Sequence record: NC_010155.1
Length of the DNA: 40,449 nucleotides
Strand: one strand, 5' to 3'
Below, piece by piece: positions 1,507 through 40,449 of the stretch. Position numbers and translations under genes: made by a program. The notes under the pieces are model-generated. The model was not told the DNA's origin, searched no databases, and saw nothing but the letters and a program-made list of their open reading frames with translations. Numbering within the stretch: the first letter of the stretch is position 1; every line of letters starts with the position of its first letter.

Positions 1507-1929
1507 TTACATCACCTTTGCTGTTTTGTAAGATTCTAGGAAATCTCTTGGGCTTTGTGTGTAAATTGTCCCGTCTTCAGTTTCAGTTATTATATAGTTT
1601 CCTTCTTTTCTTATATTCGTCATTTTCTTTCCTTTGAAGAACAACTGGTAACCTTCTTTCTGTAGCTCACGTATTGTGTTTAACATGTTTTCTACTTCGT
1701 TTTCATCGACGTTCGTTGTTTTTCTCTTTTCAACTATTATCTCTCTCTCCAAGAACTGTTCTTTCGTTAGTAGTAGCATTTCCCCATCCATGAATTCTAC
1801 TATTACTATTCCATTTTTCGTGTAAATTGACTTTACTCGTTCAACCCCATCTGCTCTTCTCATTTTTACTTTTTTTCCATTTTTAATTAACGAATTGATT
1901 TGACCTATTTTTTCTTCCACGGGTTCCAT
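1507..1929 (-). CDS. Hypothetical protein, 140 aa, with internal duplication
   Basis: Two similar halves ending DGEMLLLTKEQFLE and DGTIYTQSPRDFLE. Confidence 0.85.
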   Translation of the reverse strand: MEPVEEKIGQINSLIKNGKKVKMRRADGVERVKSIYTKNGIVIVEFMDGEMLLLTKEQFLEREIIVEKRKTTNVDENEVENMLNTIRELQKEGYQLFFKGKKMTNIRKEGNYIITETEDGTIYTQSPRDFLESYKTAKVM

Positions 1930-1960
1930 ATGAGCATATGGTTATTGGTGGTTAAAAAAA

Positions 1961-2203
1961 TTATCCCTCTGCTTGTAGTATGTATTTTCCGCTTTTCGTT
2001 ACGATTAGTTCTTTTACGGCGATATTCATTCCCAGTGCTGACGTTGCCTCTTGTATTATTTTATCCTCTATTTCTTTTAGCTCGTCAATTTCTTTCAGTC
2101 TTTCTGATTTCGTCAAGTTGATTTTCGTTGTGCCAAGCGCTTCGAAAATGTCTTGTATTGACGAGACGTCGATCTCTCCTTCAATCCTTACCTTGATTTT
2201 CAT
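1961..2203 (-). CDS. Hypothetical protein, 80 aa
   Basis: GGGAG SD before ATG; operon context. Confidence 0.8.
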   Translation of the reverse strand: MKIKVRIEGEIDVSSIQDIFEALGTTKINLTKSERLKEIDELKEIEDKIIQEATSALGMNIAVKELIVTKSGKYILQAEG

Positions 2204-2471
2204 ACTCCCACATCAAGATAATTTTTCCTTCCATGGTTATTTTACCTTTCTTGAACGTTACGATGTTCGGCACTTTCTTCTTATAGAACGAGACCACGTC
2301 GTTTATGATTTCTTTCATTTCCTCGTTTTTGGTTATGTCTCTTCCTACTATTGTCGTTTCGGTGAATGATATTTCCTCTTTTCCTATCAGTTTTACAAGT
2401 GCTAGGAGGAATTTGCCTTCTTTCGTCTTTTTTGCGTCGTCACTTGTTCCGATTATTATGTGTCTGATCGT
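2181..2471 (-). CDS. 96-codon ORF missing from the ORF track, probable ACG start
   Basis: Manual translation: (M/T)IRHIIIGTSDDAKKTKEGKFLLALVKLIGKEEISF...ILMWEYENQGKD*. GGTGA SD lies 6 nt before ACG, there is an in-frame TGA three codons upstream, and the ORF fills the only gap in the operon. Confidence 0.7.
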   Translation of the reverse strand, partial: TIRHIIIGTSDDAKKTKEGKFLLALVKLIGKEEISFTETTIVGRDITKNEEMKEIINDVVSFYKKKVPNIVTFKKGKITMEGKIILMWEYENQGKD

Positions 2472-2472
2472 G

Positions 2473-3084
2473 TTACCTCACCTTTGAGAATTGACATGAT
2501 TTTCTTAACTCACAATATCTGCATTCGTTGAATGGTGCTATAAGTGTTTTTGTCATGTACATCTCTATTTGCCGTTTTATCCATTCATCGTCCACGTGAT
2601 ATTGAGAGAAGAATGTTTGTCCTGTTTCTATTTCTGTTACTTTCCCGTCTTCCACTATGAACTCCCGCATTTCATTATTCCCCACGTATACGATTACTCC
2701 TTTTGTTGCGTTCACCATGTTCATGTATATCAGCACTTGGAATATGTGTTCTTCGTAGGGATGATCTGGAGGTTTAGCTACTGTTTTGAATTCTATTACG
2801 ATGTTGTCTTCAGTTAGTCCGTCTAGTCTTCCTATTAATGTGTAGTCTCCGTACTGTTTCCTCACTTCTTTCTCAAATTCTATCTTCTTTTCTCCATACA
2901 TCGTTAGCAATTTCTCTAGTCCCTCGTGTAATGCTACTCCTCTAATTATCGACGTTTCTGGTTCCTCTCTTTTTGGTCTCAGTACGCAGTGTAAAAGGTC
3001 TGTAACGTAGACTTCGCCTTCTTTCTTTGGTGAGTGTTCTTGTTGCATTTTCTTGAATGCTTTCCTAATTTCTTCCACTATCAT
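2473..3084 (-). CDS. cas4: Cas4-like RecB/PD-(D/E)xK nuclease with 4-Cys (Fe-S) staple, 203 aa
   Basis: N-terminal Cys (DLLHC), GRLDG...IEFK, QVLIY, C-terminal [10 protein letters not shown]. Confidence 0.9.
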
Positions 3085-4862
3085 CTACAGATCACCTCAA
3101 CCATTTTTTCGCCTAGGACTGTTTTTGCTGTCTGCTTGTTCATGCATAATTCCGTCTTATTGTGTATTCCAGCTCTCATTAGCTGTACTGCTCTTTTTCT
3201 TCCAATGCCCGGTAGTCTGACCAATGCTAAGGCTTCGCTTGGGACTCCATATCTAGTTTCTAGGTAGAGCATCTGGAGTTTTTTCGCTAGTTCTGTCCTG
3301 CCGAGTGCTTTTGATATTCTGTATACACCGTACGTTTGCCACGCTAGTGTTTCTACTAGTTTGTTCAAGTCGTGTAATGACATCCCTTTTGTACTCTTCA
3401 CGATGATCTTGTCATCAACTCCTTTTATCCAGTTTTCGAAAATTGTTCTCACGTTTTCACCTTTTGATGCGTCTAGTACATTCCTATTTTCTAATACTGC
3501 ATTTACAATGTCTTCTATCGTTGCATTGTCTTTATCTAGTACGTCCTTGTATGCGATTGCGTCTCTGACGTCGAAATATGATTCTGCTACAGCCCTTCCA
3601 TAGGTCGTTGTATAGTATCCTGTGCTGTCATGTCCTAGAATGTTCGCTTCGACTAGTTTGTTTGCTGTCTCTATTATTTCCTTTTCGTCTAGTTCTCTGA
3701 ACGATAACGTGTATCTTGTCACTCTTTTCAACTTATCCTCTTTCATATACACGTACTTGGATACTGTTGCGAGGATGAAGTCTTCAAGAACATGGTGCGG
3801 TGTTAGGTTTCCGTAGTCTACGTTGAAGTAGCGCTTTCTCAATTTTTCAGCTTCTTTCATGTCAGTTGCTTCAATTACGCAAAGTCCCTCTTCGTCGTAT
3901 CCAGGTCTTCCTGCACGTCCGCAAATTTGGTCGAACTCGATTGGTGTTAGTGATCTCCATCCGAGAAATCTTCCGTACTCGATGATAGGTAATTTCAAGT
4001 CGTCGAAAATCACGGCATAGAATGGGAAGTTTACGCCTTGTCCTAATGCGGTTGTTGTTATAATGATGTTATACTTTCCCTGCTTGGTTTCTTCTAGCAG
4101 TCTCAGTTTGGCGTCTGGTTCTAATCCTGCATGGAAGAATGCAACCCTCCCCTTGTATCTTTTATCGTAAATTAGGTAAAGTTCTTCTGCCTTTTTTCTG
4201 GTGCTTGTGAAGATCATTACGACCTTGCCTTTTCTTACAAGTTTCGTAACTATATCCTCTTTCATTTCTATCTTGTCCCCATCCTCAAAAATTAGTGTTT
4301 TTCCTATTTTGATTGCCTTATAGATGGGAATTGGTCTTTCGTCAGTTTGTAATACTTCAGCGTTTGTTATGTCTGCTATCTTATCCACGTCCGGGATAGT
4401 TGCACTCATCATTATGAGCCGTATTCCCTCATTCATTGCATACGCCATAAGGTTCTCTATTGCTTTACCTCTCTCTTTATCACCAACGTTGTGTATTTCG
4501 TCTATGATAATCATATTCACGTTGTTTGTCCATCCGTAATGTCTTCTTAGTACTGCGTCAGCTTTCTCGTACGTTGTAAAGATGATCTTGGCGTCTATGT
4601 TTTCAGGGTCCTCGTCGTAAACTTCGCTTGTTAGTGCGGTAGTTGGCGTTGATGACGATATCTTTTTTTGGAAGTCGTCATTTAGCTGTAGAGCCAACGC
4701 TTTCAGAGGGACAGTGTAGAGTACTCTTCCGTTTGCTTCGCTTGACATTAGCATTGCTAGGAATGATTTTCCTGTACCGGTGGGTGCTGAGATTAGTATG
4801 TTTTTACTCGTGTTGTGGAATACGTTGAGTACTTTTTGTTGGAATTCATTGAGCTTTATCAT
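3081..4862 (-). CDS. SF2 Ski2/Hel308(Hjm)-like DNA helicase, 593 aa
   Basis: [40 protein letters not shown] and C-terminal Hh[10 protein letters not shown]. Start moved to ATG 4862, which follows a GGTGA SD. Confidence 0.95.
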
Positions 4863-5085
4863 TTTTCTCACCTGAGTAGAATTCTCTCTCATCTATTTTT
4901 CGAATTACTGAAATTTTTGAGATTTTAATGTATATTGGATTTTGTTGCTGGTCTTCACCAAGAATGTTATTGTAATCGTCTATCTCTATGATCTTTAGTC
5001 TGTATTTTCGTCCTTGAGCCAAGACCTCTACGATATCTCCAACTGAGAATGAGATTTTTCCTAAGTTGAGTTGTTTTTTAGCCAT
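4846..5085 (-). CDS. Putative Sm/Hfq-like protein, 79 aa
   Basis: LKIIEIDDYNNIL resembles Sm1; IYIKISKISVI resembles the Hfq Sm2 motif (YKHAISTV). Own TATA about 26 nt upstream. Confidence 0.55.
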   Translation of the reverse strand: MAKKQLNLGKISFSVGDIVEVLAQGRKYRLKIIEIDDYNNILGEDQQQNPIYIKISKISVIRKIDEREFYSGEKNDKAQ

Positions 5086-5146
5086 TACTTTATGGTATCA
5101 CATTCCAGAATTTAAGTTTTTTATTCCCTTTCTCCTACTGTTGTTT

Positions 5147-5332
5147 ATGAGAGTTATTGTCCACGTTGAGGGTGTTGTAGACGTAGAAGAACCTTGTGAA
5201 GACGAATTGGAATGTCTTCTAATTTATTCACAAATGCTTGAGAAGTATGAGAATGAGTTAGGCTATTGCTACGGACTGAGTTTGCAAGAAAGAGTTAAGT
5301 GTTCACACGGTTATGTCGAGATAAAGAGGTAA
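5147..5332 (+). CDS. Small acidic Cys-containing protein, 61 aa
   Basis: MRVIVHVEG... portion of ORF 5066..5332; TATA (TTTAAG 5111-5116) fits a leaderless start. Confidence 0.65.
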   Translation: MRVIVHVEGVVDVEEPCEDELECLLIYSQMLEKYENELGYCYGLSLQERVKCSHGYVEIKR

Positions 5333-5338
5333 AAAAAT

Positions 5339-5890
5339 TCATTTTGATTTAAATGCTTCATACTGTTTCTTTAGTGCTAGTAGCTGGCTGGGATGGACTA
5401 AAACCAACATCGGTTGCGGATAATCCGATTGCTGGTACGCAACCCCGACGATTACGGATCCCTGCTTAAGTTTTGGCACAACGTTTCTCAACAACGAGTA
5501 GTATACTCCCTGTGATGTTGAGAACAAGTAGACTTCTTTCTTTTTGCTATTGATCTCTTTTACTAGGTCAATGGGTATCGTTTGTTGGTCTTGTATTGTA
5601 TTGACTATCTTTTCTATCAACTGGTCGTCAGTTATTACGTATCCGTCAATTTGAGATACCTGCCCTGGTTCGTTGGACTTATTAAAGATGACATCATGAA
5701 TTTCCACTTTCTTTATAATTAGCAATTTCCAGACGTATTTATTCAGATTTTCCCTTTGAAATGGCAGTACGAGTTCATCAGACGTCGCTTGTTCTTGCAA
5801 TTCTATTTTCTGGGTTTGGGCTTCTTCTGGCATTTCTTCGCTTTGTTCTTCCTCTTGCAATTCCTCTTTTATTTTTGATTTCTCTACCAT
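5339..5890 (-). CDS. Hypothetical protein, 183 aa, with acidic disordered N-terminus
   Basis: GAGGTGG SD; E/Q-rich N-terminus followed by a globular region. Confidence 0.85.
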   Translation of the reverse strand: MVEKSKIKEELQEEEQSEEMPEEAQTQKIELQEQATSDELVLPFQRENLNKYVWKLLIIKKVEIHDVIFNKSNEPGQVSQIDGYVITDDQLIEKIVNTIQDQQTIPIDLVKEINSKKKEVYLFSTSQGVYYSLLRNVVPKLKQGSVIVGVAYQQSDYPQPMLVLVHPSQLLALKKQYEAFKSK

Positions 5891-6033
5891 TTTCTTACCA
5901 CCTCTTTCAATTCCTGTGGATATGTATCCCAGTATTGACAGAATTCTAAAAAAACTTTCTCCGTATGACTTAATGCCTCCAGGGGTAAGCCCTGGGGGTT
6001 AACTATTTTTTCACATTCCTCGAAGCTGGGCAT
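5884..6033 (-). CDS. Small protein, 49 aa (not in ORF track)
   Basis: Manual translation MPSFEECEKIVNPQGLPLEALSHTEKVFLEFCQYWDTYPQELKEVVRKW*. TTTAAATA TATA upstream, AAGGGG SD, stop overlaps start of the 183-aa gene. Confidence 0.7.
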   Translation of the reverse strand: MPSFEECEKIVNPQGLPLEALSHTEKVFLEFCQYWDTYPQELKEVVRKW

Positions 6034-6132
6034 CTTTTTCCCCTTACCAAAATGTAGTAGAACAAGTATTTAAACATTTTCTTTCGTGAAGCTTTATATA
6101 CCAGTTTGTGATATCATATTTTAGTGGTCAGA

Positions 6133-6363
6133 ATGGAGAAAAGCGTTGAGGAGGAAATTATTTCTAAGATAAGGGATAGGTTGTGTGAATCGGGATACTT
6201 AATCAGTCATGTGGTTCTTTTTAAAATGAGTGAAAAATCTGGATTTTTTTATATCGTGGTTGAAGGGGATCAGGGACTTACATTAGTTGAAAGAGGGAGG
6301 TATACCATATCAGGGAATTCTCTTATGATCCAACTTTCAACAGGTGAGACATTTTATATCTAA
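6133..6363 (+). CDS. Hypothetical protein, 76 aa
   Basis: TTTATATA box near 6093; GTGGT SD; converges with the 143-aa gene. Confidence 0.75.
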   Translation: MEKSVEEEIISKIRDRLCESGYLISHVVLFKMSEKSGFFYIVVEGDQGLTLVERGRYTISGNSLMIQLSTGETFYI

Positions 6364-6366
6364 AAA

Positions 6367-6798
6367 TCAATGAATTCTTATTTTTTTGAGCGTTCTTCGT
6401 GTTAATATGTATATTATTCTAAGTGCTTTTTTCTTTTCATTCTCTTCATCAACATTTTGTGCTAATTCTGTTATTATGTTTATTGTTGTTATTATTTCGT
6501 CTTCTTTCTTTTTGTCTATTTCGTCAATGTATAATAGATCGTTCGCAATTTCGTATGCTTTTGTAATCTCTTTCTGTAGTTTTAGTAACGTTGCTATTTT
6601 TTCTCCCTTTTCAGTTAGTATTGTGACGTCCTGGAATTCGTTTTTCTCTTTATTGAAAATTCGTTTTATTTCTGTTAGATCTTTTTTTGTGAGGCTGTTT
6701 ACAATTCGTCTCGTTTTCCCGTCTTTGATCGTAATTTGTTTCTCATCGAATAGCCGAATAAGAATTCTTTTTTCTCCTTTAGATAGCTCTTTTTCCAT
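6367..6798 (-). CDS. Winged-HTH (MarR-like) protein, 143 aa
   Basis: LSKGEKRILIRL...IVNSLTKKDL...LTEKGEKIA, a typical wHTH wing signature LTxxG. Confidence 0.65.
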   Translation of the reverse strand: MEKELSKGEKRILIRLFDEKQITIKDGKTRRIVNSLTKKDLTEIKRIFNKEKNEFQDVTILTEKGEKIATLLKLQKEITKAYEIANDLLYIDEIDKKKEDEIITTINIITELAQNVDEENEKKKALRIIYILTRRTLKKIRIH

Positions 6799-6842
6799 CT
6801 CTTTTACACCTTTATTTTATAAGAAATAGGATGAGAAAAAAA

Positions 6843-7172
6843 TTATTGAATTTCGAATAACCAAAGTTCATAGCCTATTTTTTCTAGCTCTTCTGTTGTT
6901 TTCACTACGACACCTTCAGGAAGGCGTTGCTTTAGCATAAATGCTAGGATTCTGTCTCCATGTGTCACTTTGATTTGGACTCTGTTCATTGGTACGTTAA
7001 CTCCTAAGATGCTCGACAAGAGTTCTGCTGTCGCTTGGTGACCGATGGCAGACGTGAATTGTTCTTTGGTCACTAGTTCTTTCGCTTCTTGGATAGTTAT
7101 TTCTTTTGCCTTGACAGTATACTCCTCCCCCGGTTTTAAGGGGAGGATTGCGGAATTCAAAATATACAGCAT
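6843..7172 (-). CDS. acrIII-1: DUF1874-family viral ring nuclease (anti-CRISPR against type III cA4 signalling), 109 aa
   Basis: SAIGH45, NR64, R83LPE86G correspond to the catalytic/binding residues (H47, R66, R85, E88) of the SIRV1 gp29/STIV B116 family. Confidence 0.92.
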   Translation of the reverse strand: MLYILNSAILPLKPGEEYTVKAKEITIQEAKELVTKEQFTSAIGHQATAELLSSILGVNVPMNRVQIKVTHGDRILAFMLKQRLPEGVVVKTTEELEKIGYELWLFEIQ

Positions 7173-7193
7173 ATGTTCTACTACAATCTTCGA

Positions 7194-7210
7194 ATATATA
7201 AGTTTTTTGT
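7194..7210 (-). promoter_or_regulatory. BRE-TATA promoter of acrIII-1
   Basis: Minus strand ACAAAAAAC-TTATATAT, 21 nt before the ATG (leaderless geometry). Confidence 0.75.
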
Positions 7211-7280
7211 TTAAGCCATGTCTTCATTTGTTCCTAATAATTTATTAAAGATAAAGGGATATGTTGTCTGGTGGGCTGGC

Positions 7281-7676
7281 GTGAAGAAAAGTAGAAAAGG
7301 ATTAAGTAATGCAGTTTCTGCCCTAATACTTGTAGTAGCTTCAGTAATAATAGCACTGATAGTTGTTGGATTTGCTTTCGGATTAATTGGTGCTTTTACT
7401 GCACAACCGGTAATACATGTAGTATATGCATACGTGCAAAATCATCATCTGTATGTTGTGTTACAGAATACTGGTAATGTGCCAGCTATGATAGTTGCTT
7501 ATATAATAGATGGTGAGGGACCTAATTCTACGAATATTCAAGTTCCTGTCGGAACGGTAACTATATCTATACCTCTACCGTCAAGTTTATCGCTCTCCTC
7601 TGGTCAGTTTGTAGACTTTACTTTGATTATTAGTAATGGGGAGGTTATACCAGGCGTAGCAACGGTAGAATGCTGA
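7281..7676 (+). CDS. Archaeal type IV pilin (class III signal peptide, Aap/DUF973-like), 131 aa
   Basis: GTG start after GGTGGG SD; KKSRKG/LSNAVSALILVVASVIIALIVVGFAFGL is a basic leader, prepilin cleavage site and hydrophobic N-helix. Confidence 0.85.
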   Translation: MKKSRKGLSNAVSALILVVASVIIALIVVGFAFGLIGAFTAQPVIHVVYAYVQNHHLYVVLQNTGNVPAMIVAYIIDGEGPNSTNIQVPVGTVTISIPLPSSLSLSSGQFVDFTLIISNGEVIPGVATVEC

Positions 7677-7747
7677 TTTTTTAAATTTATGCAATTTTTC
7701 TTTATGAAGAGAAGAAGGGAAGAATAAAAAAAGAGGTTGATTTTCAA

Positions 7748-8431
7748 TCAATCTGCTTTCTTAACGGGTGGGTGAACTAGTAAATAGATTCCTGGACCTA
7801 GTGTTATGGGATCATGATCGTTACTCTTGATGTCTAATCTACTGTCAACTCTTACTAATGTGCCATCCTTTGCATGTGCTAACTTTACTACTCCTTCAGT
7901 ATAGTGGTTGTAAATTTCTAACGGATAATCATAAAATTCAATGTAATCAGGCACTTCGACTTCATGGATCTCTAGATGCCCTTGCGTGAGTATTGGGGTT
8001 GATTGTATTGTTTTCACCTTGTGCGCAATATATACTTTAACTCCATAATTATCGAACTCAACCAAGTATTTCCTTGGGCTTAGGTGTTTTAGAAAATCCT
8101 TGTAGGTTTGTAAGAATATCTCTGTGAATGTTAATTTGTCTCTGGTGAACTTAAAGTCCGCCTCAAGTGTCATTTTTTTCCAGTCCATGATCCACAGTCC
8201 TCTTACTGGTTTTGCATTAATTTCTCCGTTGTTCTCGACTTCCACTTGATAGCATCCTTTCACTGTCATTCCAGAGTTGCTTATGTACCATGCACAGTCG
8301 GTGACGTTTCTGTCATATCCAGTTACTACGATTTTATATATCCAGTTACCTGACTTCAACTGTATTGCTGGGGGTTCAGGTAGATTCGGGAGTTTCAATT
8401 TTTTACTTGATTCTTGATTTTGAGTTTCCAT
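7748..8431 (-). CDS. 227-aa protein with C-terminal QGx...(H)xxH...G-x-Y...AD domain
   Basis: Start moved to METQNQ (AGGGG SD, TATA near 8467-8474). C-terminal TQGHL...KDGTLVRV...SNDHDPITLGPGIY...KKAD*. Confidence 0.8.
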   Translation of the reverse strand: METQNQESSKKLKLPNLPEPPAIQLKSGNWIYKIVVTGYDRNVTDCAWYISNSGMTVKGCYQVEVENNGEINAKPVRGLWIMDWKKMTLEADFKFTRDKLTFTEIFLQTYKDFLKHLSPRKYLVEFDNYGVKVYIAHKVKTIQSTPILTQGHLEIHEVEVPDYIEFYDYPLEIYNHYTEGVVKLAHAKDGTLVRVDSRLDIKSNDHDPITLGPGIYLLVHPPVKKAD

Positions 8432-8609
8432 ACTATCCCCTCTACCTAAATAGTTGGTAAAAAAGCTATATAAACATTTCTCTCTGTCTTTTCTGTTAAT
8501 GAAGATATTTACATAAGCCAATTAAAGTTAGTTTCAGTAGATTTTAAAGAAGAAATAATAATGCAAAAAGTAAAAAAATGAAATAAAAAAATAACTTATC
8601 TTAAATTTA

Positions 8610-8867
8610 TTATTCGCCCCAGATCATTAATCCTAGGAGATTGACATCTAATTTTTTAAGATCTTCAAAATTTTCGACACCAAAATTTTCGATATTCTCC
8701 TCCGTATCGTCTGTGTACCACCCATCTTTATTTTGGAATATAATTTTGATTTTTTTACTATCCTCCTCATCTTGAAATATTTTTGCAATTTCTTCCAATT
8801 TGTTTTTATTATCTAGTTTGTAAATTATTATTTTCTTGTTTTCGATTTCTTTTTCATACCTGGGCAT
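8610..8867 (-). CDS. Small charged protein, 85 aa, monocistronic
   Basis: Own TATA and GAGGG SD; T-rich tract downstream. Confidence 0.8.
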   Translation of the reverse strand: MPRYEKEIENKKIIIYKLDNKNKLEEIAKIFQDEEDSKKIKIIFQNKDGWYTDDTEENIENFGVENFEDLKKLDVNLLGLMIWGE

Positions 8868-9056
8868 TTCTTCTTCCCTCTTATTATATTTCTGATCCCC
8901 CCCATATATATCTTATTATGATTAGATTACCGACACTCTGAATATTTATCTCAAGAAGGCGAGAAAATAATGAAAATCGATAGATATTTTTGATAGATAA
9001 AGATAGTAATAATATCTGAAAATTGAGAAAAATGGTGTATAAAAAAAGAAATAACT

Positions 9057-9545
9057 TTATCTAAACTTATGTAAATCGTAAAGTTTGTAGCACTCAAAGC
9101 CGAGATGTGTTTCTCTACACTCCTCTTTGAACATTTTTGTTTGGACTGACAATTTTTCACGCCACAAGTATTTTAGTAACTCCTTTATGAAGATTTTTCT
9201 TAATTTGTAATCTAAGTAGCATTTTTCGTCAGTACATCCGCAGTTTTTGCAAATCATTTCCAAAAGCGGTTCGTATTCTATTTTTTTCAGCATTTCTAGC
9301 CTATCGTTCCAGTATTCAATGGTATAGTCAGTGACCTCAAAATTAAATTGTAACACTTTTTTCTCAGCTAAATCGTCTTTTATCCATAAATAATGGGATA
9401 TTTTCACAGTTATTATATTCTTGTACTCTTTTGGTTTTTTTGGTATTATAATTGTGACTTGTCTCTTTAACCAGTTTTGTTCATATATGTAAAAAAAGAT
9501 ATCTTGTTCAAAATTGTTTTCATCAAGACTTATGTCTGTCCACAT
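9057..9545 (-). CDS. Hypothetical protein, 162 aa, with Cys cluster (CKNCGC...C)
   Basis: TTTATATA promoter 38 nt upstream; GGTAGGGG SD. Confidence 0.8.
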   Translation of the reverse strand: MWTDISLDENNFEQDIFFYIYEQNWLKRQVTIIIPKKPKEYKNIITVKISHYLWIKDDLAEKKVLQFNFEVTDYTIEYWNDRLEMLKKIEYEPLLEMICKNCGCTDEKCYLDYKLRKIFIKELLKYLWREKLSVQTKMFKEECRETHLGFECYKLYDLHKFR

Positions 9546-9615
9546 TTATAGTGTCCCCTACCATTATCTTGTGCAAAATGGCTATATAAATGTTTTCTTC
9601 TCTTATTCTCTTCTT

Positions 9616-9840
9616 ATGGAGAGGGGAATATTCTCTTTAATATTAACTCTTTTGCTTTTTATAGTAATACTACGTAATTATCTAATCATGAGTACTAGAT
9701 ATGAAATTATAAAAGTTGAGTGCAAAGAAAATAACTGTTTTATCACCTTGAAGCTGATAAGAAATGGTACAATAGAGATTTTCAACTCTGTACCAATTGA
9801 AAATGTGAATAAACTGATAGAGAATTTCTCATTTTTTTAA
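9616..9840 (+). CDS. Small protein with N-terminal transmembrane helix, 74 aa
   Basis: TATATAAA at 9583-9590 fits a leaderless ATG at 9616; alternative start at 9688. Confidence 0.55.
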   Translation: MERGIFSLILTLLLFIVILRNYLIMSTRYEIIKVECKENNCFITLKLIRNGTIEIFNSVPIENVNKLIENFSFF

Positions 9841-10062
9841 CTGAAAAAGAATTTTTGATTCTGTGTAATACTGAGTTAGTTTCTAGTTCTGTTTTCTTTT
9901 CGTGTAGGGAAAAGTTTACGTTTGAATTTTCAAAATTTATTTGACGATTTTGTGTACATATTCAGGAAGAACAGTTACGTATTGTGCATGAAAAATCTGA
10001 TTGACTGACTTGTAATTACTATAGAAATTTTATTACAAAAATTTGAAAAATTGTCTGGAAAC

Positions 10063-10095
10063 TGAGAAAATACCCTAATTTGGGGCATTTTCTCA
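10063..10095 (-). other. 13-bp stem-loop in ORF-free region
   Basis: Minus strand TGAGAAAATGCCC-CAAATTA-GGGTATTTTCTCA, with one G-U pair only on this strand. Confidence 0.5.
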
Positions 10096-10224
10096 CTCTA
10101 GAACAAAGTTTTCAAGCAATTTTTCTATTGTATGTAATATATTCTGTGAAGAGTAATAAAGTGAGCTCAATCTAGAGAAAAAGATATATAAATGTTCAAG
10201 ATAATATATATAGTAGGAGGAAGT

Positions 10225-10479
10225 ATGGAAGAAGTAAATATATCTAAAAAAGTAACAATGGAAGAGACAAGAAAGCAATTGTTGAAAGAACTTGAAGTAC
10301 TAGAAAAGGTAAATGAAATTTTAGATAGTGTTAATAAGATAATGGGAGAGATCAGTGATACATGTCATATGGCGATAGAGTCAATGCCCCAGGTCAGAAA
10401 GGATCTAATAGAACAGTGTTCAAATGTTCAGAAACAGTTATACAAACTATATGATATAATTTCTGATACAGTATATTAA
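10225..10479 (+). CDS. Helical/coiled-coil protein, 84 aa
   Basis: TATATAAA promoter; AGGAGG SD before MEEVNISKK. Confidence 0.8.
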   Translation: MEEVNISKKVTMEETRKQLLKELEVLEKVNEILDSVNKIMGEISDTCHMAIESMPQVRKDLIEQCSNVQKQLYKLYDIISDTVY

Positions 10480-10500
10480 AGTCAATTCTCTTTTTTTTAT

Positions 10501-10644
10501 TCTTCTTTCGTTCTTGATGGAGAGAATTCTGAGTTATACTATAATTCATATATTATATATATGAATTATGCGTCTTCTCTTATTCTTGATGAAGAGAATG
10601 ACGTAGCATACTATTATTCATATATATAATATATGTATTATAGC
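10501..10644. repeat. Two 72-bp AT-rich tandem units, each with a palindrome
   Basis: Gapless alignment 53/72 identical; perfect 13-bp inverted repeat at 10541-10553/10557-10569. Confidence 0.85.
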
Positions 10645-10672
10645 GTTAGAAAAAGTTCAGTAAAAAATGAAT

Positions 10673-12367
10673 TTATTTCGATTCAAAAATTATACCTTCA
10701 TATTCCTTAAAAACGAAATTATATCTCTGATCAAATTGTCTCTGGAAAATTTCATTGTCATAAGCAATATCCAGTATTATTCCTTTTTGTTTATCTTTTG
10801 CAGGGCGCATTACTCTTCCTATCCGTTGAACTAATTTTATTCTACTTTTTCCCTGTGATAGTAATACTATAAGTCTAAGATTTGGAATATCTAATCCCTC
10901 ATCCGCAAGACTTGTCGCTATTAATGTTTGTATCTTTCCGTTTTTCAAATTCTCTATTTTTTTCATTCTCTCTTCTAGAGTTGTTTGGGAGGTAACATAA
11001 TCCGCAATTATTCCATTTTCGTTAAACATTTCTGATAATTTTCTGGCAACGCTAATTCTTCTAACAATTACTAATGCTGGAAATGCATTAATTGATTTTA
11101 TTTTCTCTATTATTTGAATATTTGTCATTGGTGAATTCTCAAATAATCTTAGCAGTAATGAGTAATATTTGGCAAATTCCATTTTTTCTTTTTCTTTTTC
11201 CAATTTCTTTATTTTTTCTTTCAATTTCTTTGGAATTTCTGGTACAAACGCAATATATTCCAAAGGAACTAAATAGTGATTCTTGACTAGTTCTTGATAA
11301 TTAATGGAATAAGATATTCTCCCTAGTAGTCCTAAAATTTCTAGGTCCCTGCCGTCTTCTCTATATGGAGTAGCCGTGAGCCCTAACCTGATGCTATTCG
11401 GCGAATCTAGTAACAAAGCTTTAATGCTATTGGCAGGTGTATGGTGCGCCTCATCTATTATAATCAAGTCTGCATTATTAATAATGTCTCTAAGTTCATT
11501 ATGTTTGTTGCGCTTTTTCTGAGAATAATAATATGAAATTGATAATGCTATCAAGTTGCTATCTTTTTCTTTTTTCAATTCATTCAACTCCCCTGATACT
11601 ATTGCAAAGTTTAGATCTTCTTTTTTCGCAAATTGTTGAAATTGTTTTAGCAATGTCGTTGAATTTACTGCGTATATTACTTTTGCATTTTTCTTATTCT
11701 TTAGCATTTCTAACGTTGCTAGTATAGAAATTATAGATTTTCCAGAGCCCGTTGGCGCTTTTATAATTCCTGTTCCTACTATATTAACATCAGCAATCCA
11801 TTGCTTTATTGAATTTATCTGGTAGTCTCTTAACTCAAAGTTTTTCAATGTAATATCGTGAAAACTGAAATTGGTAAATGGTTTTATTTTTATCTCATTG
11901 ACATTTAACAATCTCCAGTATAAGCCTCTATAAGTTACGAAATAATCGGAATGCTTCCATGCGAGTAATATTTCCTCCTCTTCATATTTGCCTTTATCGT
12001 AATCGAATTTTTTCAATTTATATGATAACATTTTTTTGTATTTTTCAAGGTCATCATAAATTTGAATATAGTTTCCTCTAATTTTTGCAAACACGATTTT
12101 TTTGTCATTATTAATATAAGGCGATAGTATATTGTAAATTTCTTCTCCTACAAAATCGCTCAGAAAGTCGGCAATTTTTTTCAATTCTTCTTTCTCAATT
12201 CTAGAGATTTTAAACTCGTTCAAGTACCAATTTTTGTCACTTGGATCAAAATCGGCGATAGATTTTACTGCTAAGAGATATTGTCTAAACTCATCTTTTT
12301 CTAGATATCTTTTTGGTCTAGGTATTGCAATTTTTTCATTATTAAGAGACATATTGCTCTCACTCAT
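10673..12367 (-). CDS. SF2 XPB/Rad25-like helicase, 564 aa
   Basis: ELRDYQ, APTGSGKS, DEAHH, GLTATPYREDG, LADEGLDIP, QRIGRVMR. Confidence 0.95.
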   Translation of the reverse strand: MSESNMSLNNEKIAIPRPKRYLEKDEFRQYLLAVKSIADFDPSDKNWYLNEFKISRIEKEELKKIADFLSDFVGEEIYNILSPYINNDKKIVFAKIRGNYIQIYDDLEKYKKMLSYKLKKFDYDKGKYEEEEILLAWKHSDYFVTYRGLYWRLLNVNEIKIKPFTNFSFHDITLKNFELRDYQINSIKQWIADVNIVGTGIIKAPTGSGKSIISILATLEMLKNKKNAKVIYAVNSTTLLKQFQQFAKKEDLNFAIVSGELNELKKEKDSNLIALSISYYYSQKKRNKHNELRDIINNADLIIIDEAHHTPANSIKALLLDSPNSIRLGLTATPYREDGRDLEILGLLGRISYSINYQELVKNHYLVPLEYIAFVPEIPKKLKEKIKKLEKEKEKMEFAKYYSLLLRLFENSPMTNIQIIEKIKSINAFPALVIVRRISVARKLSEMFNENGIIADYVTSQTTLEERMKKIENLKNGKIQTLIATSLADEGLDIPNLRLIVLLSQGKSRIKLVQRIGRVMRPAKDKQKGIILDIAYDNEIFQRQFDQRYNFVFKEYEGIIFESK

Positions 12368-12442
12368 TCTAATATTATATAAGGAAAATGGATATATAAA
12401 TGTTCAGCATGTCAAGAATGAGAAAGAGAGATAAAAAAAGGG

Positions 12443-36722: not shown

Positions 36723-37007
36723 ATGGTAAGCTTATTCCACTTCAAGAAAGAGATTAAAACACCAAGATCACTCTTCGTGTCAACAAAAACAGAAATGCCA
36801 CTAGTATTAATGGTAGCAATAGGAAAACATCATGCAGTGGGAATTGGAGAAGTAGGAGATAAATCCGCAACAGTAGAGAAATTCATACCACCATTCGCAC
36901 CTAAGCCAACACCAGAAGAAATAGCAAAAGAATTGCTGAAAAAACTAGATGTACCAAAAGACGAATGGGAAACAATACTAGCAACAAGAAAAGAAATCAC
37001 TTTTTGA
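36723..37007 (+). CDS. Hypothetical protein, 94 aa
   Basis: TATAAA about 40 nt upstream; GTGGG SD. Confidence 0.75.
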   Translation: MVSLFHFKKEIKTPRSLFVSTKTEMPLVLMVAIGKHHAVGIGEVGDKSATVEKFIPPFAPKPTPEEIAKELLKKLDVPKDEWETILATRKEITF

Positions 37008-37632
37008 GCTCTTTCGCCCTCGAGATAGAACACATTATCTCGAACATATTCTCCCAGGATAATAAGTACTTGGGATTACCATGAAAAAGAAATACTGACT
37101 CGATATCATCAACAACAACCTCATTCCCATAGTACACTTTACCGTCTCTGACAACGAACTTAGAAGGATAACGAGCCATAAGACAAGCAATGTGATACTT
37201 GTAAGGTGTAACATTAGGATCCAAAGTAATCGTAGCATAAACTGGTTCACAGTAAAAATATTCACCGTCGAGTTCGTACATTGCAACAGAATTGTCAAGA
37301 AGCTTAACAAAATCAGCACCCAACAAATAAAGAACTCTACATGGATAACCAACAGAATTCATTGCAAGCTTCTTTGCATTCTGCACTGACGTAAAGCGTA
37401 CTACTGGAAATGGAGAAAATAACGATATATCGTGATAATCATAAACACAACCCTTCAAGACTTCCATAGCATACAAAATGAGTTCATTACCAGATTTATT
37501 AGTCGAGAGATCAACCATCGCAACAAAGTTATCTGGCAACGTCGACCCATAATAATATGTGAACCCCGAAGGAGTAATTATACCACCATAATATACATCA
37601 CGTGAAGCAAGAAGTACGGGGACAGTAGTCAT
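36997..37632 (-). CDS. Cassette copy 1 gene C, 211 aa, possible degenerate ART fold
   Basis: Paralogue of 38557..39180; YYYGS, FTS...A..LA, GNEVVV. Confidence 0.85.
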   Translation of the reverse strand: MTTVPVLLASRDVYYGGIITPSGFTYYYGSTLPDNFVAMVDLSTNKSGNELILYAMEVLKGCVYDYHDISLFSPFPVVRFTSVQNAKKLAMNSVGYPCRVLYLLGADFVKLLDNSVAMYELDGEYFYCEPVYATITLDPNVTPYKYHIACLMARYPSKFVVRDGKVYYGNEVVVDDIESVFLFHGNPKYLLSWENMFEIMCSISRAKELKK

Positions 37633-38333
37633 ATTTTCGCCTCCAACGTCTTTCTCATATTTTTTATACGTTCCTCACTCGTAACTTCACGATAAACTGG
37701 AACTACCATATCAAACAACTGCAGAAGATCTTTACCCTTTATCTTGTACTTAGTGCTCGAGACGGGGAATTTATAGCAACGAACCTCCAATTCTCTCAGG
37801 TATTTTATAGCACCATAATTATAAAGCTTACCATTGACAATACCAGATAATTCTGACCTAACTAGGAAATAATCGTCTGGTGCACAATACTTAGGATCAT
37901 ATTTAGCAACGAGAATAACGGGCTTTGAAGAATCAATAGCAAACAAAAGAGCAGACGCAGGTAAATAAGACCAATAGGTCAAATATGTATCCTTACCACC
38001 AACAAGATGAACAATACCACCACTAGTATAGAAACTATAGTTGTTGTTCTCCACGTAATCTAATGACGTACCACGATAAATTAAAGCACCTTGGAGCGAA
38101 ATGGAATTCCACTCGTTAACGAGGTCATAAATCTCCTTAAACACGTAACCATCAAACTTAGGAGATGCTGAAGGGTCATTAAGTAGTAAATCGTGAAAAG
38201 TATTATTCATTAAATTAACGACATCAGAGGGTAAAGCATAATCAATACTATGATAATAAGGGAGAAGATAATATACTTTCTTCATTAAAGGCAACTTCAT
38301 AATGACGTCAGCAACGACGTCAGTAGGTAACAT
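37629..38333 (-). CDS. Cassette copy 1 gene B, 234 aa, putative R-S-E ADP-ribosyltransferase
   Basis: LIYR87G, TYWS122YLPASALLFA, PVILVAKY, RE181LE183V. Gene is confident; function is from motifs. Confidence 0.75.
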   Translation of the reverse strand: MLPTDVVADVIMKLPLMKKVYYLLPYYHSIDYALPSDVVNLMNNTFHDLLLNDPSASPKFDGYVFKEIYDLVNEWNSISLQGALIYRGTSLDYVENNNYSFYTSGGIVHLVGGKDTYLTYWSYLPASALLFAIDSSKPVILVAKYDPKYCAPDDYFLVRSELSGIVNGKLYNYGAIKYLRELEVRCYKFPVSSTKYKIKGKDLLQLFDMVVPVYREVTSEERIKNMRKTLEAKI

Positions 38334-38520
38334 TATAACCCAACTCGTGCAAAACTTCCACTATTTTCTTGAAAGCGTATTCGTAATCTTTACCAGTATT
38401 CTCAATAAACATTTCAATCATGAGATTTAGCACGTGGCGATCAACAGCGTAACCAACAATATAACGTGACGACTTAAGAGTTTCAATCATATTTCGAACA
38501 AATTCGAATTCGTCAACCAT
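38320..38520 (-). CDS. Cassette copy 1 gene A, 66 aa helical protein
   Basis: Leaderless start; paralogue of 39871..40068 (EVLHELGYNV shared). Confidence 0.85.
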   Translation of the reverse strand: MVDEFEFVRNMIETLKSSRYIVGYAVDRHVLNLMIEMFIENTGKDYEYAFKKIVEVLHELGYNVTY

Positions 38521-38550
38521 GTGTTAAATGAATGAAAAGGAGACTTAAAA
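38518..38550 (-). promoter_or_regulatory. Cassette promoter copy 1 (33 bp, identical to 40066-40098)
   Basis: Minus strand TTTTAAGTCTCCTTTTCATTCATTTAACACATG: TATA followed by a leaderless ATG. Confidence 0.85.
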
Positions 38551-38556
38551 ACTTTA

Positions 38557-39180
38557 TCAACGTACTTTAGAAATCGAGCACAATATCTCGAACATATTCT
38601 CCCAGGATAATGCATATTTAGGATTAGCACAACATCTATCCCACGATTTGATATTCTCAATAACAACCTCATTCCCATAGTACACTTTACCGTCTCTAAC
38701 GACAAACTTAGAAGGATAAAGAGCCATGAAACAAGCAATGTGGTATACATAAAAGGTTTGATTGGGATCACTGATTATACTGGACTTTGATGGGGTACAG
38801 TATAAATATTCACCTTCAATCTCATACATTGCAACAGAATTATCAAGATAACGAACAAATTTTGCACCTAACAAGTTAAGAACTTTACATGGATAACCAA
38901 TAGAATTTAATGCAAGTTTTTTTGCATTCTCCCTAGACGTATAACGAACAACTGGAAATCTGAAATATTTTAAAAGATCATTAGAATCATAGATGGTATC
39001 CTTCAAGACTTCCATAGCATATGAAACATACTCGTTACCAGACTTATTGGTAGCAATCTTAACCAATGCAACAAAATTATCTGGTAATGTAGACCCATAG
39101 TAATATGTGTACCCTGAAGGAGTAATTATACCACCAACATATCTACCACGTGAGGCTGAGAGCGTAGGAGCAAATAACAT
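38557..39180 (-). CDS. Cassette copy 2 gene C, 207 aa, possible degenerate ART fold
   Basis: YYYGS, YTS...A..LA, GNEVVI. Confidence 0.85.
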   Translation of the reverse strand: MLFAPTLSASRGRYVGGIITPSGYTYYYGSTLPDNFVALVKIATNKSGNEYVSYAMEVLKDTIYDSNDLLKYFRFPVVRYTSRENAKKLALNSIGYPCKVLNLLGAKFVRYLDNSVAMYEIEGEYLYCTPSKSSIISDPNQTFYVYHIACFMALYPSKFVVRDGKVYYGNEVVIENIKSWDRCCANPKYALSWENMFEILCSISKVR

Positions 39181-39881
39181 TATTTCACCTCAAGACCTTT
39201 ACGAATTCTCTCAACTTCTTCTTCATCCATATATTGACGATAAACTGGAACTACCATATTAAACAGATCTAGGAGATCTTTACCCTTCAGCATATACTTA
39301 GTATTCGCAACGGGAAACTTGTAGCAACGAACTTCCATTTCTCTTAAATACTTTATAGCACCATGGTTATAAGGCTTATCATCAATAATACCAGTAAACT
39401 CATCAAGAATGGAAAAGTAATTATCTGGAGCACAATACTTGGGATCATACTTAGCAACTAGAAGAACTGGTCTACTAGCCTGGGAAGCGAAAATTAAAGC
39501 GGAAGCGGGAAAATAAGACCAAAAAGTTAGGAATTTACTATCACCATGAATAACTCTAAAAAATCCACCACTAGTATAGAAATCACGATCAAGATTTTCC
39601 ACATAGTCTAATGACGTACCACGATAAATTAAAGCGTTATCGAGAGAAGTTGAATTCCATTGAGAAATTATGTCATATATTTCTCGAAATTTATAACCAT
39701 CAAACTTAGGTTTCAACGTAAAATCCTGAATCAATATATTATGAAAAACAGAATCAATAGCATATAGAACATCGTCTGGTATAACATCCTCTATACTGTA
39801 ATAATAATAGAAAGATGCGTAAACTTTCTTCATAAAAGGCATCTTATTCATAACATCAACAACAACTTCATTAGGCAACAT
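39180..39881 (-). CDS. Cassette copy 2 gene B, 233 aa, putative R-S-E ADP-ribosyltransferase
   Basis: LIYRG, TFWSYFPASALIFA, PVLLVAKY, REMEV. Start moved to MLPNE (39881 = 38333 + 1548). Confidence 0.75.
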   Translation of the reverse strand: MLPNEVVVDVMNKMPFMKKVYASFYYYYSIEDVIPDDVLYAIDSVFHNILIQDFTLKPKFDGYKFREIYDIISQWNSTSLDNALIYRGTSLDYVENLDRDFYTSGGFFRVIHGDSKFLTFWSYFPASALIFASQASRPVLLVAKYDPKYCAPDNYFSILDEFTGIIDDKPYNHGAIKYLREMEVRCYKFPVANTKYMLKGKDLLDLFNMVVPVYRQYMDEEEVERIRKGLEVK

Positions 39882-40068
39882 TGTAACCCAACTCATGTAA
39901 AACTTCTGTCACTTTCTTGAAGGCGTATTCAAAATCATGTCCAGTCTCCTCAATAAACATTTCAACCATACGTTCCAATGTATGTGAATCAACCGTATAA
40001 CCTTGAATATCATGTGTTGATTTTAAAACAAGAAGCATTTTTTGAACAAGTTCGAACTCATCGGTCAT
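39871..40068 (-). CDS. Cassette copy 2 gene A, 65 aa helical protein
   Basis: Paralogue of 38320..38520. Confidence 0.85.
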   Translation of the reverse strand: MTDEFELVQKMLLVLKSTHDIQGYTVDSHTLERMVEMFIEETGHDFEYAFKKVTEVLHELGYNVA

Positions 40069-40098
40069 GTGTTAAATGAATGAAAAGGAGACTTAAAA
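40066..40098 (-). promoter_or_regulatory. Cassette promoter copy 2
   Basis: Identical 33-mer to 38518-38550. Confidence 0.85.
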
Positions 40099-40161: not shown

Positions 40162-40449
40162 AAATGACATAGGGTACGAAGACAAGAGATACGAGGAACG
40201 AGAAAATGAGAACGAGAGAACTAGATACGGAAACAATGACATAGGGTACGAAGAAACGGGAAACGGGAAATGAAAGAATGAGAAACGGGAAATGAGATAC
40301 CATACCCCCATATGGTAACATATCAAAATGTATCTTCTTAATAAGAGGCAATGACTTAGGGTACTATATACTAATTAAATTTGTACTAGATGTTACGTGT
40401 ATTGTGTAGATACTTTATGTTGTGTGTAGTATCCTCATACTTGATGTTA
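40162..40449. repeat. Right inverted terminal repeat (288 bp)
   Basis: Exact reverse complement of 1-288. Confidence 0.97.

Follow-up and report, generated by a model that had tools for sequence, protein, structure and literature searches.

A predicted, highly divergent ADP-ribosyltransferase in a conserved three-gene module of betalipothrixviruses

Introduction

ADP-ribosylation is a central weapon in the conflicts of bacterial and eukaryotic viruses with their hosts. Packaging of ADP-ribosyltransferases (ARTs) into virions is common among phages, as in T4 Alt and the MuF-fused ARTs, and a 2022 survey of 21,191 viral proteomes recorded ARTs only in caudoviruses, nucleocytoplasmic large DNA viruses, baculoviruses, two RNA viruses and, rarely, single-stranded DNA phages (PMC9503650). 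Here, we analyzed the 40,449-base genome of Acidianus filamentous virus 3 (AFV3; Betalipothrixvirus acidiani; AM087120 / NC_010155), referred to below as the window, whose right end carries two tandem copies of a three-gene cassette, A-B-C. Predicted structure and residue conservation, as opposed to sequence homology, indicate that gene B very probably encodes a divergent ART-fold enzyme of the arginine-serine-glutamate (R-S-E) type. We consider it fairly probable that the cassette is a conserved operon whose B product uses nicotinamide adenine dinucleotide (NAD+) to mono-ADP-ribosylate a macromolecule, with the virion-associated A protein and the C protein as obligate partners.

To our knowledge, most genes of crenarchaeal viruses are without an assigned function, and we know of almost nothing on how filamentous archaeal viruses reprogram their hosts. 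A preliminary description of the locus knew of no functional account of such a system in lipothrixviruses. Full-text literature searches likewise found no ART described in these viruses, and they are not among the groups for which the 2022 survey lists ARTs (PMC9503650).

Results

The two-copy region spans positions 36997-40098 (3,102 bases, 100% identical to the deposited AFV3 genome), just inside the annotated inverted terminal repeat (40162-40449) at the right end of AFV3. It contains six open reading frames (ORFs), all on the minus strand and exactly where the preliminary description had placed them, which form two tandem A-B-C units with products of 66 and 65 amino acids (aa) for A, 234 and 238 aa for B, and 211 and 207 aa for C in copies 1 and 2, respectively. 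Within copy 1, A overlaps B by 14 nucleotides (nt) and B overlaps C by 4 nt, an arrangement that fits a single operon. From the terminus inward, the features are as follows.

40069-40098, minus strand: promoter/5′ element of copy 2, the 30 nt right before the A2 start codon, with the center of a TATA-like box at about -27
39871-40068, minus strand: A2 (ORF65b), 65 aa, acidic (isoelectric point, pI, 4.7) and probably helical; 66% identical to A1; PHROG 16569, "virion structural protein"
39180-39896, minus strand: B2 (ORF233), predicted ART paralogue; 60% identity to B1; R, S and ExE retained
38557-39180, minus strand: C2 (ORF207), beta-rich, fold unknown; 68% identical to C1; PHROG 13134, unknown function
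38521-38550, minus strand: promoter/5′ element of copy 1, an exact repeat of the 30-mer that begins right after the C2 stop codon
38320-38520, minus strand: A1 (ORF66), 66 aa, acidic and probably helical; orthologue annotated as a virion protein
37629-38333, minus strand: B1 (ORF234), predicted R-S-ExE ART, from an AlphaFold2 model, Foldseek matches and invariant columns
36997-37632, minus strand: C1 (ORF211), beta-rich, fold unknown; AlphaFold2 predicted local distance difference test (pLDDT) 65.5; gp68 of Sulfolobus islandicus filamentous virus (SIFV) is a remote homologue

The first ATG of B2 (39896) gives the 238-aa product, and the RefSeq start (39881) gives 233 aa. A possible start lies five codons upstream of the RefSeq one (window 39881-39896), and the N-terminus of P0003, a relative from a metagenome, is extended by five residues in much the same way.

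The AlphaFold2 model of B1, built with eight relatives, has a mean pLDDT of 83.5 and a predicted template modeling (TM) score of 0.83. It consists of an N-terminal helical region (residues 1-77), a candidate ART core (about 84-198, corresponding to about 37740-38084) and C-terminal helices (201-233). The core opens with strand 84-90, which carries R87, followed by a helix, strand 118-122, which ends in S122, helix 125-133 and strand 138-144; after a beta-rich insert and a short helix come strands 183-187, with E181 and E183 at its entry, and 194-198. The order is β1(R87)-α-β2(S122)-α-β3-insert-β5(E183)-β6, with six core strands and helices after β1 and β2. A split β-sheet of the ART kind, whose absence the preliminary description had named as grounds for rejecting the assignment, is thus supported at moderate strength by this predicted structure. 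The corresponding core of B2 is predicted at about 39288-39632, and the BFVD model of that protein (A7WK89) superposes on the B1 model with a TM-score of 0.88.

In Foldseek searches of the PDB with the B1 model, the top matches were nearly all ART folds, with probabilities of up to 0.98. The best of them were the A chains of cholera toxin and heat-labile enterotoxin (probability 0.87-0.98, E ~0.02), and further matches included Vis, the tRNA 2′-phosphotransferase Tpt1, Arr, the Rhs toxin TreX, pertussis toxin S1 and poly(ADP-ribose) polymerases. A library of viral predicted structures returned, besides B2 and gp62 of SIFV2 (TM 0.67) from B's own family, DarT, Tpt1, proteins named as ART domains and several proteins of Bacillus phage G, a phage that encodes at least ten ARTs (PMC9503650). 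Large phage proteins annotated as "structural", "head morphogenesis" or "minor capsid" were matched as well. An ART fold, as claimed in the preliminary description, is thus what both libraries point to, albeit with borderline scores.

Conservation among relatives agrees with this assignment. Across 13 B relatives found with HMMER, down to 23% identity, R87, S122, E181 and E183 are among 10 invariant columns. In 91 unique full-length relatives with a median identity to B1 of 29%, only R87, S122, C150, Y155, E181, E183 and C186 are invariant; the short peptide pattern from which the metagenomic members of this set were collected contained E181, E183 and C186 and excluded R87, S122, C150 and Y155. 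B therefore has a conserved arginine in β1, a serine at the end of β2 and an ExE at the start of β5, in that order. Such an R-S-ExE set is the signature of the protein-modifying R-S-E clade, other ARTs having H-Y-E or, as in Tpt1, R-H-R-R. The motif blocks quoted in the preliminary description occur in both B copies, its residue numbering is right for copy 1, and the divergence between the blocks is as patchy as it had noted: in 15-aa windows, B1 and B2 are 20% identical at residues 31-45 and 26% at 106-120, against 80-86% near the R, β3 and ExE. In the AFV8 orthologue gp60 (ORF240; P0004; positions 3291-4013 of L013), both ends are more than 90% identical to B1, and about three short internal stretches, touching the Ser and ExE regions, lose similarity with small changes in length. 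Compensated frameshifts, errors of sequencing or genuine decay could explain these stretches; tblastn gave no better match in another frame.

The partner proteins are less readily classified. A is an acidic protein of 65-69 aa (pI 4.6-5.3 in the betalipothrixviruses); a single His is invariant, and the C-terminus is conserved. Its AFV9 orthologue, ORF67, was labeled a "viral structural protein" by the depositors of that genome, as were seven other genes, the two major capsid proteins included among the eight, and RefSeq and PHROGs repeat the label for A. The module is probably virion-linked. For C, the AlphaFold2 model is good over residues 1-130 and poor in the remainder, and a fold search with it gave no meaningful structural match and no sign of a macrodomain or ADP-ribosylhydrolase. 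Comparison of A, B and C with Pfam, PHROGs, NCBIfam and PADLOC yielded only function-less PHROGs, B's family included, apart from the virion label of A, and neither A nor C matched known antitoxin, macrodomain, ADP-ribosylhydrolase or Xre/ParS families.

Homologues of B occur in every betalipothrixvirus record, namely AFV3, AFV6, AFV7, AFV8, AFV9, SIFV (gp67) and SIFV2 (gp62). BLAST detected A and C in AFV3, AFV6, AFV7, AFV8 and AFV9 and in one short metagenome contig ordered A-B-C. In SIFV, gp69 is a remote homologue of A (hhalign probability 92%) and gp68 a likely homologue of C (63%), the latter being backed by a BLAST match of the SIFV-type C to AFV9 ORF197 (E 1e-4); SIFV-type viruses thus hold these three genes as well, ordered A-C-B. 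Starting from the short peptide pattern, a search of metagenomes recovered 84 hot-spring loci with B relatives; among 185,579 genomes of bacteria and archaea, the same pattern led to none. An ORF and hidden Markov model census of 80 metagenome loci gave the layouts ACB (45 loci), ACB..ACB (9), CB (9), ABC (3), CB..ACB (2), B..ACB (1), B..A (1) and B alone (10). A-like, B and C-like ORFs were hardly ever apart on sufficiently long contigs, and since the partial layouts come mostly from short contigs, the trio is almost always together. Judged by gene content, A-B-C is a core module of betalipothrixviruses and not a variable accessory.

The most distant B homologue, P0017 (258 aa, 23% identity), retains R, S and ExE. 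It is encoded on a 46-kb hot-spring contig with a family-B DNA polymerase (L007; JGI 3300025462, Ga0209120_1000046; genes at 4717-6865), where its gene overlaps an upstream 231-aa gene and lies alongside a divergently transcribed gene for an A-like protein of 68 aa (pI 6.1) and one for a 67-aa membrane protein. With this uncultured element counted in, the B family may reach beyond the Lipothrixviridae.

The two AFV3 units align end to end as DNA, and their products are 66% (A, E 6e-31), 60% (B, E 1e-109) and 68% (C, E 4e-105) identical. For all three genes, synonymous divergence (dS) between the copies is ~0.9-1.2 and the ratio of nonsynonymous to synonymous divergence (dN/dS) ~0.26; both cassettes are under purifying selection. 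AFV6, AFV7 and AFV8 have a single cassette, orthologous to AFV3 copy 1 (B 74-91% and C 91-99% identical; the AFV6 copy 91-99%). The AFV6 and AFV8 cassettes are nevertheless preceded by terminal sequence that matches the region upstream of AFV3 copy 2, which places copy 2 between the terminus and the ancestral copy. The two copies join at the promoter they share, directly behind the stop codon of C2. At 60% and 52-56% identity, respectively, B2 is equally far from B1 and from the uncultured lineages P0006-P0008; taken over the whole B1 clade and these lineages, the range is 52-61%. From this equal distance and the high dS, copy 2 is old or foreign, and a recent tandem duplication in situ was judged unlikely on the same two grounds. 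To judge by these alignments, the extra cassette most likely came from another lipothrixvirus, through recombination at the shared promoter; an ancient duplication followed by three losses is the alternative, and recombination the simpler account.

Two B genes are present in 12 of the 80 metagenome loci. On a 45.7-kb SIFV-like contig (L019, identical to L088; IMGVR_UViG_3300027931_000001 = Ga0208312_100002), two A-C-B cassettes at 1763-7114 are 67% (A), 39% (C) and 52% (B) identical to each other. Each adjoins its own gp71-like and gp70-like small genes, and between the two cassettes lie genes resembling ORF94 and ORF235. The duplicated stretch exceeds that of AFV3 in size, and the event was independent of it.

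The 30 nt before the A1 and A2 start codons are identical, occur only twice in the window (none was expected in shuffles), and are also identical in AFV6 and AFV7 and conserved at 29 of 30 positions in AFV8. The center of a TATA-like octamer lies ~27 nt before the ATG of A. Promoter spacing in Sulfolobales is known, so that the TATA position indicates the transcript start; it predicts a leaderless or near-leaderless A-B-C mRNA. Of the "identical leaderless promoter" in the preliminary description, the identity is thus confirmed as an exact 30-mer before both A genes, and the leaderless part follows from spacing. A scan for bacterial promoters and terminators is uninformative in an archaeal virus.

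A 2024 study predicted early anti-defense genes of archaeal viruses from shared regulatory sequences (PMC11065993). Its AFV3 entries are only gp12, gp14, gp18, gp20 and gp28, none of which lies outside the leftmost third of the genome, and its list, for which single genes were screened and operons excluded, holds no gp6x of AFV3, AFV6 or AFV8, no gp7x of AFV9 and nothing from the cassette. Upstream of gp14, gp18 and gp20 we found a common TTTATATA-type box ~35-40 nt from the start codon, followed in gp18 and gp20 by a G-rich leader. The promoter of A has neither the TTTATATAGCC-type element nor the leader found ahead of gp14, gp18 and gp20; in box type and spacing it resembles the promoter of the virion-protein gene gp39. 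This comparison bears on promoter type and not on the time of operon expression. Along the stretch that holds these early-type promoters (window 6100-12400), the upstream region of gp23, a putative helicase, has a TTTATATA-type box ~35-40 nt before the start codon too; it fits the early anti-defense promoter class, and gp23 is absent from the published list.

The cassettes neighbor genes for a virion protein, a glycosyltransferase, a methyltransferase and a phosphatase. ORF94 (36723-37007, plus strand), annotated as a virion structural protein, is convergent with C1, and the two genes share 11 nt at the 3′ end of C1. It is conserved as AFV9 ORF93 and SIFV gp72, and a homologue lies between the cassettes of the two-cassette SIFV-like contig. 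At 40163-40300, the right terminal repeat contains two 66-nt direct repeats, 76% identical and spaced by 72 nt, both of which open with the same 20-nt motif, also present in the AFV6 terminus. An Rfam scan of the region found no RNA family.

Discussion

In the reading that we favor, each cassette would be transcribed as one operon from the conserved TATA-type promoter, presumably as a leaderless or near-leaderless mRNA, and its three products would act together. A, the small acidic helical protein, would end up in virions. B, as a very divergent member of the ART superfamily with the Arg/Ser/Glu-x-Glu constellation of the cholera-toxin-like (R-S-E) clade, would most likely bind NAD+ in the cleft of its split β-sheet and attach ADP-ribose to some macromolecule, for which the E-x-E motif makes a protein arginine the default expectation. 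C would be a beta-rich protein, and A and C would probably act as partners of B, for instance by tethering it to the virion or by choosing its target. The second AFV3 cassette would be an old and still constrained addition, placed between the ancestral copy and the terminal repeat at the right end. The elements of this scheme that we infer are the use of NAD, the target, what A and C do, delivery with the virion and the timing of expression.

Several observations weigh against it. The Foldseek matches to the PDB are borderline in E-value (~0.02), with TM-scores of only ~0.3 and root-mean-square deviations of 5-6 Å over ~150 columns. B and 13 relatives, searched individually, gave no match in Pfam, NCBIfam or PADLOC and hence no link to any ART family, and a sequence search of the PDB with B, as a single sequence and as profiles of 13 and 29 sequences, was empty; no curated or solved ART is thus matched significantly by sequence or profile. 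Because E181, E183 and C186 were part of the scan pattern, their constancy in the metagenome set is partly by construction. The link to virions comes from the depositors' label on the orthologue of A; neither B nor C carries a virion-protein annotation.

A possible bridge to known ARTs was also discounted. A profile search with B against 1.84 billion proteins gave only 11 matches, one of which is P0016, a metagenomic protein of 7,059 aa with at least nine repeats that hold an invariant Tyr-Arg-Gly, a Ser-Trp and two Glu one residue apart, in that order. One repeat has a sub-threshold Pfam match to DRAT (E 0.003). The E-value of 3.8e-11 for P0016, however, sums eight near-identical weak repeat matches, and profile-profile comparison with hhalign gave a probability of 13-19%, falling to 1% with the 91-sequence alignment, which counts against the proposed assignment as well. 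The repeat profile had no match in the PDB. At the level of sequence, the resemblance of P0016 to B is one of motifs and no evidence of homology. The P0016 repeats alternate with a recurring His/Gly-rich short motif and other domains, and the protein looks like a phage "polyvalent" protein with unusually many ART-like modules.

The preliminary description had proposed an early host-takeover or anti-defense module in which B is a toxic ART, A its immunity protein or regulator, much as in a toxin-antitoxin system, and the two paralogues hit different targets. The small size and acidity of A (pI 4.6-5.3) and its 14-nt overlap with B are the typical layout of an antidote and its toxin, an A-like gene stands even beside the most distant B homologue, and the recurrent, deeply diverged duplication in AFV3 and in 12 of 80 loci resembles the diversification of an arms race. 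We nevertheless regard this account as quite unlikely, although its last element, a difference in target between the paralogues, may hold by itself. The AFV9 orthologue of A was deposited as a virion structural protein, the majority order A-C-B separates A from B and so weakens a strict toxin-antidote pairing, and searches with A and C gave no match to families of antitoxins, macrodomains or ADP-ribosylhydrolases. Moreover, a promoter of A that lacks the TTTATATAGCC-type element of the early class, together with a distribution that makes the module core in all betalipothrixviruses, argues against an accessory early anti-defense island, and the cassette and its orthologues are missing from the published list (PMC11065993). 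The dN/dS of ~0.26, a gene average, speaks of constraint and not of positive selection.

Two further accounts concern what B does. It might be a true NAD-using ART whose substrate is a nucleic acid, as for DarT or Tpt1, or the maturing virion proteins, or it might consume NAD+ or an NAD-derived signal. DarT, Tpt1 and Arr are indeed among the structural matches at similar scores, and the virion association of A and the neighboring virion-protein, glycosyltransferase, methyltransferase and phosphatase genes suggest modification or maturation; the invariant R, S and ExE, however, are the protein-modifying R-S-E set and not H-Y-E or R-H-R-R, and the best-scoring solved structures belong to the R-S-E clade, so that we hold this account to be distinctly improbable. 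A still less likely one is that B is no enzyme at all, the fold being a false positive or that of a decayed pseudo-ART, and that A, B and C are minor structural or assembly parts of the virion, for instance of its terminal structures. It would agree with the missing sequence-level ART signal, the low TM-scores, the structural annotation of A and the place of this core module in the conserved right arm near the virion protein ORF94. A pseudoenzyme or structural protein would not be expected, however, to retain as its invariant columns in 91 sequences precisely four residues of catalytic type (R, S and both E) together with two Cys and a Tyr, and the top structural matches are nearly all ARTs in two independent libraries. 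Returning to the favored reading of B as a mono-ADP-ribosylating enzyme with two partners, its delivery with the virion, by analogy with T4 Alt and the MuF-fused phage ARTs, is conceivable yet doubtful. We consider unlikely the fuller version, a virion-carried device of tether (A), enzyme (B) and specificity factor or partner (C) that would enter with the DNA and ADP-ribosylate a host transcription or defense protein, a second cassette providing a second target specificity.

If the favored reading is true, one of the few core modules of betalipothrixviruses would gain an enzymatic function, and a sequence-orphan ART family with obligate partner genes would be defined. ADP-ribosylation would then extend to viruses of hyperthermophilic archaea, where the 2022 survey reported none. 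Should the virion-carried device prove real, no earlier case would exist of a filamentous virus of archaea delivering an enzyme as effector, and Adnaviria would be a realm with its first ART. With ~90 natural variants of B available, the hypothesis is directly testable by structure determination.

Among described systems, the pairs of ART toxin and antitoxin (DarT-DarG, ParT-ParS, Tre1-Tri1) share with the AFV-type cassettes a small gene that overlaps a gene for an ART-fold protein, and the structural matches of B include DarT as well as ART toxins of the Rhs type. They differ in that A and C are unlike macrodomain, Xre/ParS and ADP-ribosylhydrolase antidotes, that the usual order here is A-C-B, and that members of the family were found on viral contigs only. 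DraT (PF07357) is a prokaryotic Arg-specific ART of the R-S-E type. Its profile is the sole Pfam match in the chain of evidence, and it falls, below threshold, on the P0016 repeat mentioned above and not on B; B and its relatives had no match at all to PF07357. The cholera-toxin-like clade (the A chains of cholera toxin and heat-labile enterotoxin, and Vis) has the same Arg-Ser-ExE order as B. In contrast to its members, to which it is only 12-17% identical over aligned columns at a TM-score of ~0.3, B has an N-terminal helical region, a beta-rich insert of ~35 residues between β3 and ExE, C-terminal helices, the invariant C150 and C186 and an invariant Tyr, and it would be a cytoplasmic protein of a virus in an archaeal system, outside any secretion or B-subunit context.

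Another close parallel is with the virion ARTs of phages, such as T4 Alt and the MuF and polyvalent proteins. As in those, a virus-encoded ART, here a predicted one of the R-S-E type, is genetically tied to a virion protein, and the B model matches the phage "structural", "head morphogenesis" and "minor capsid" proteins. Unlike MuF and polyvalent ARTs, B has no MuF or portal fusion, no Pfam domain and no significant sequence similarity to them. Its presence in virions is only surmised, the host of AFV3 is a hyperthermophilic crenarchaeon, and the virus is an enveloped filament without a head or injection machinery. In place of a fusion, B has two dedicated partner genes, A and C. On these computational grounds, the module appears to hold an ART family that is an orphan by sequence and comes with two partners of its own, in a realm of viruses from which no ART had been reported before.

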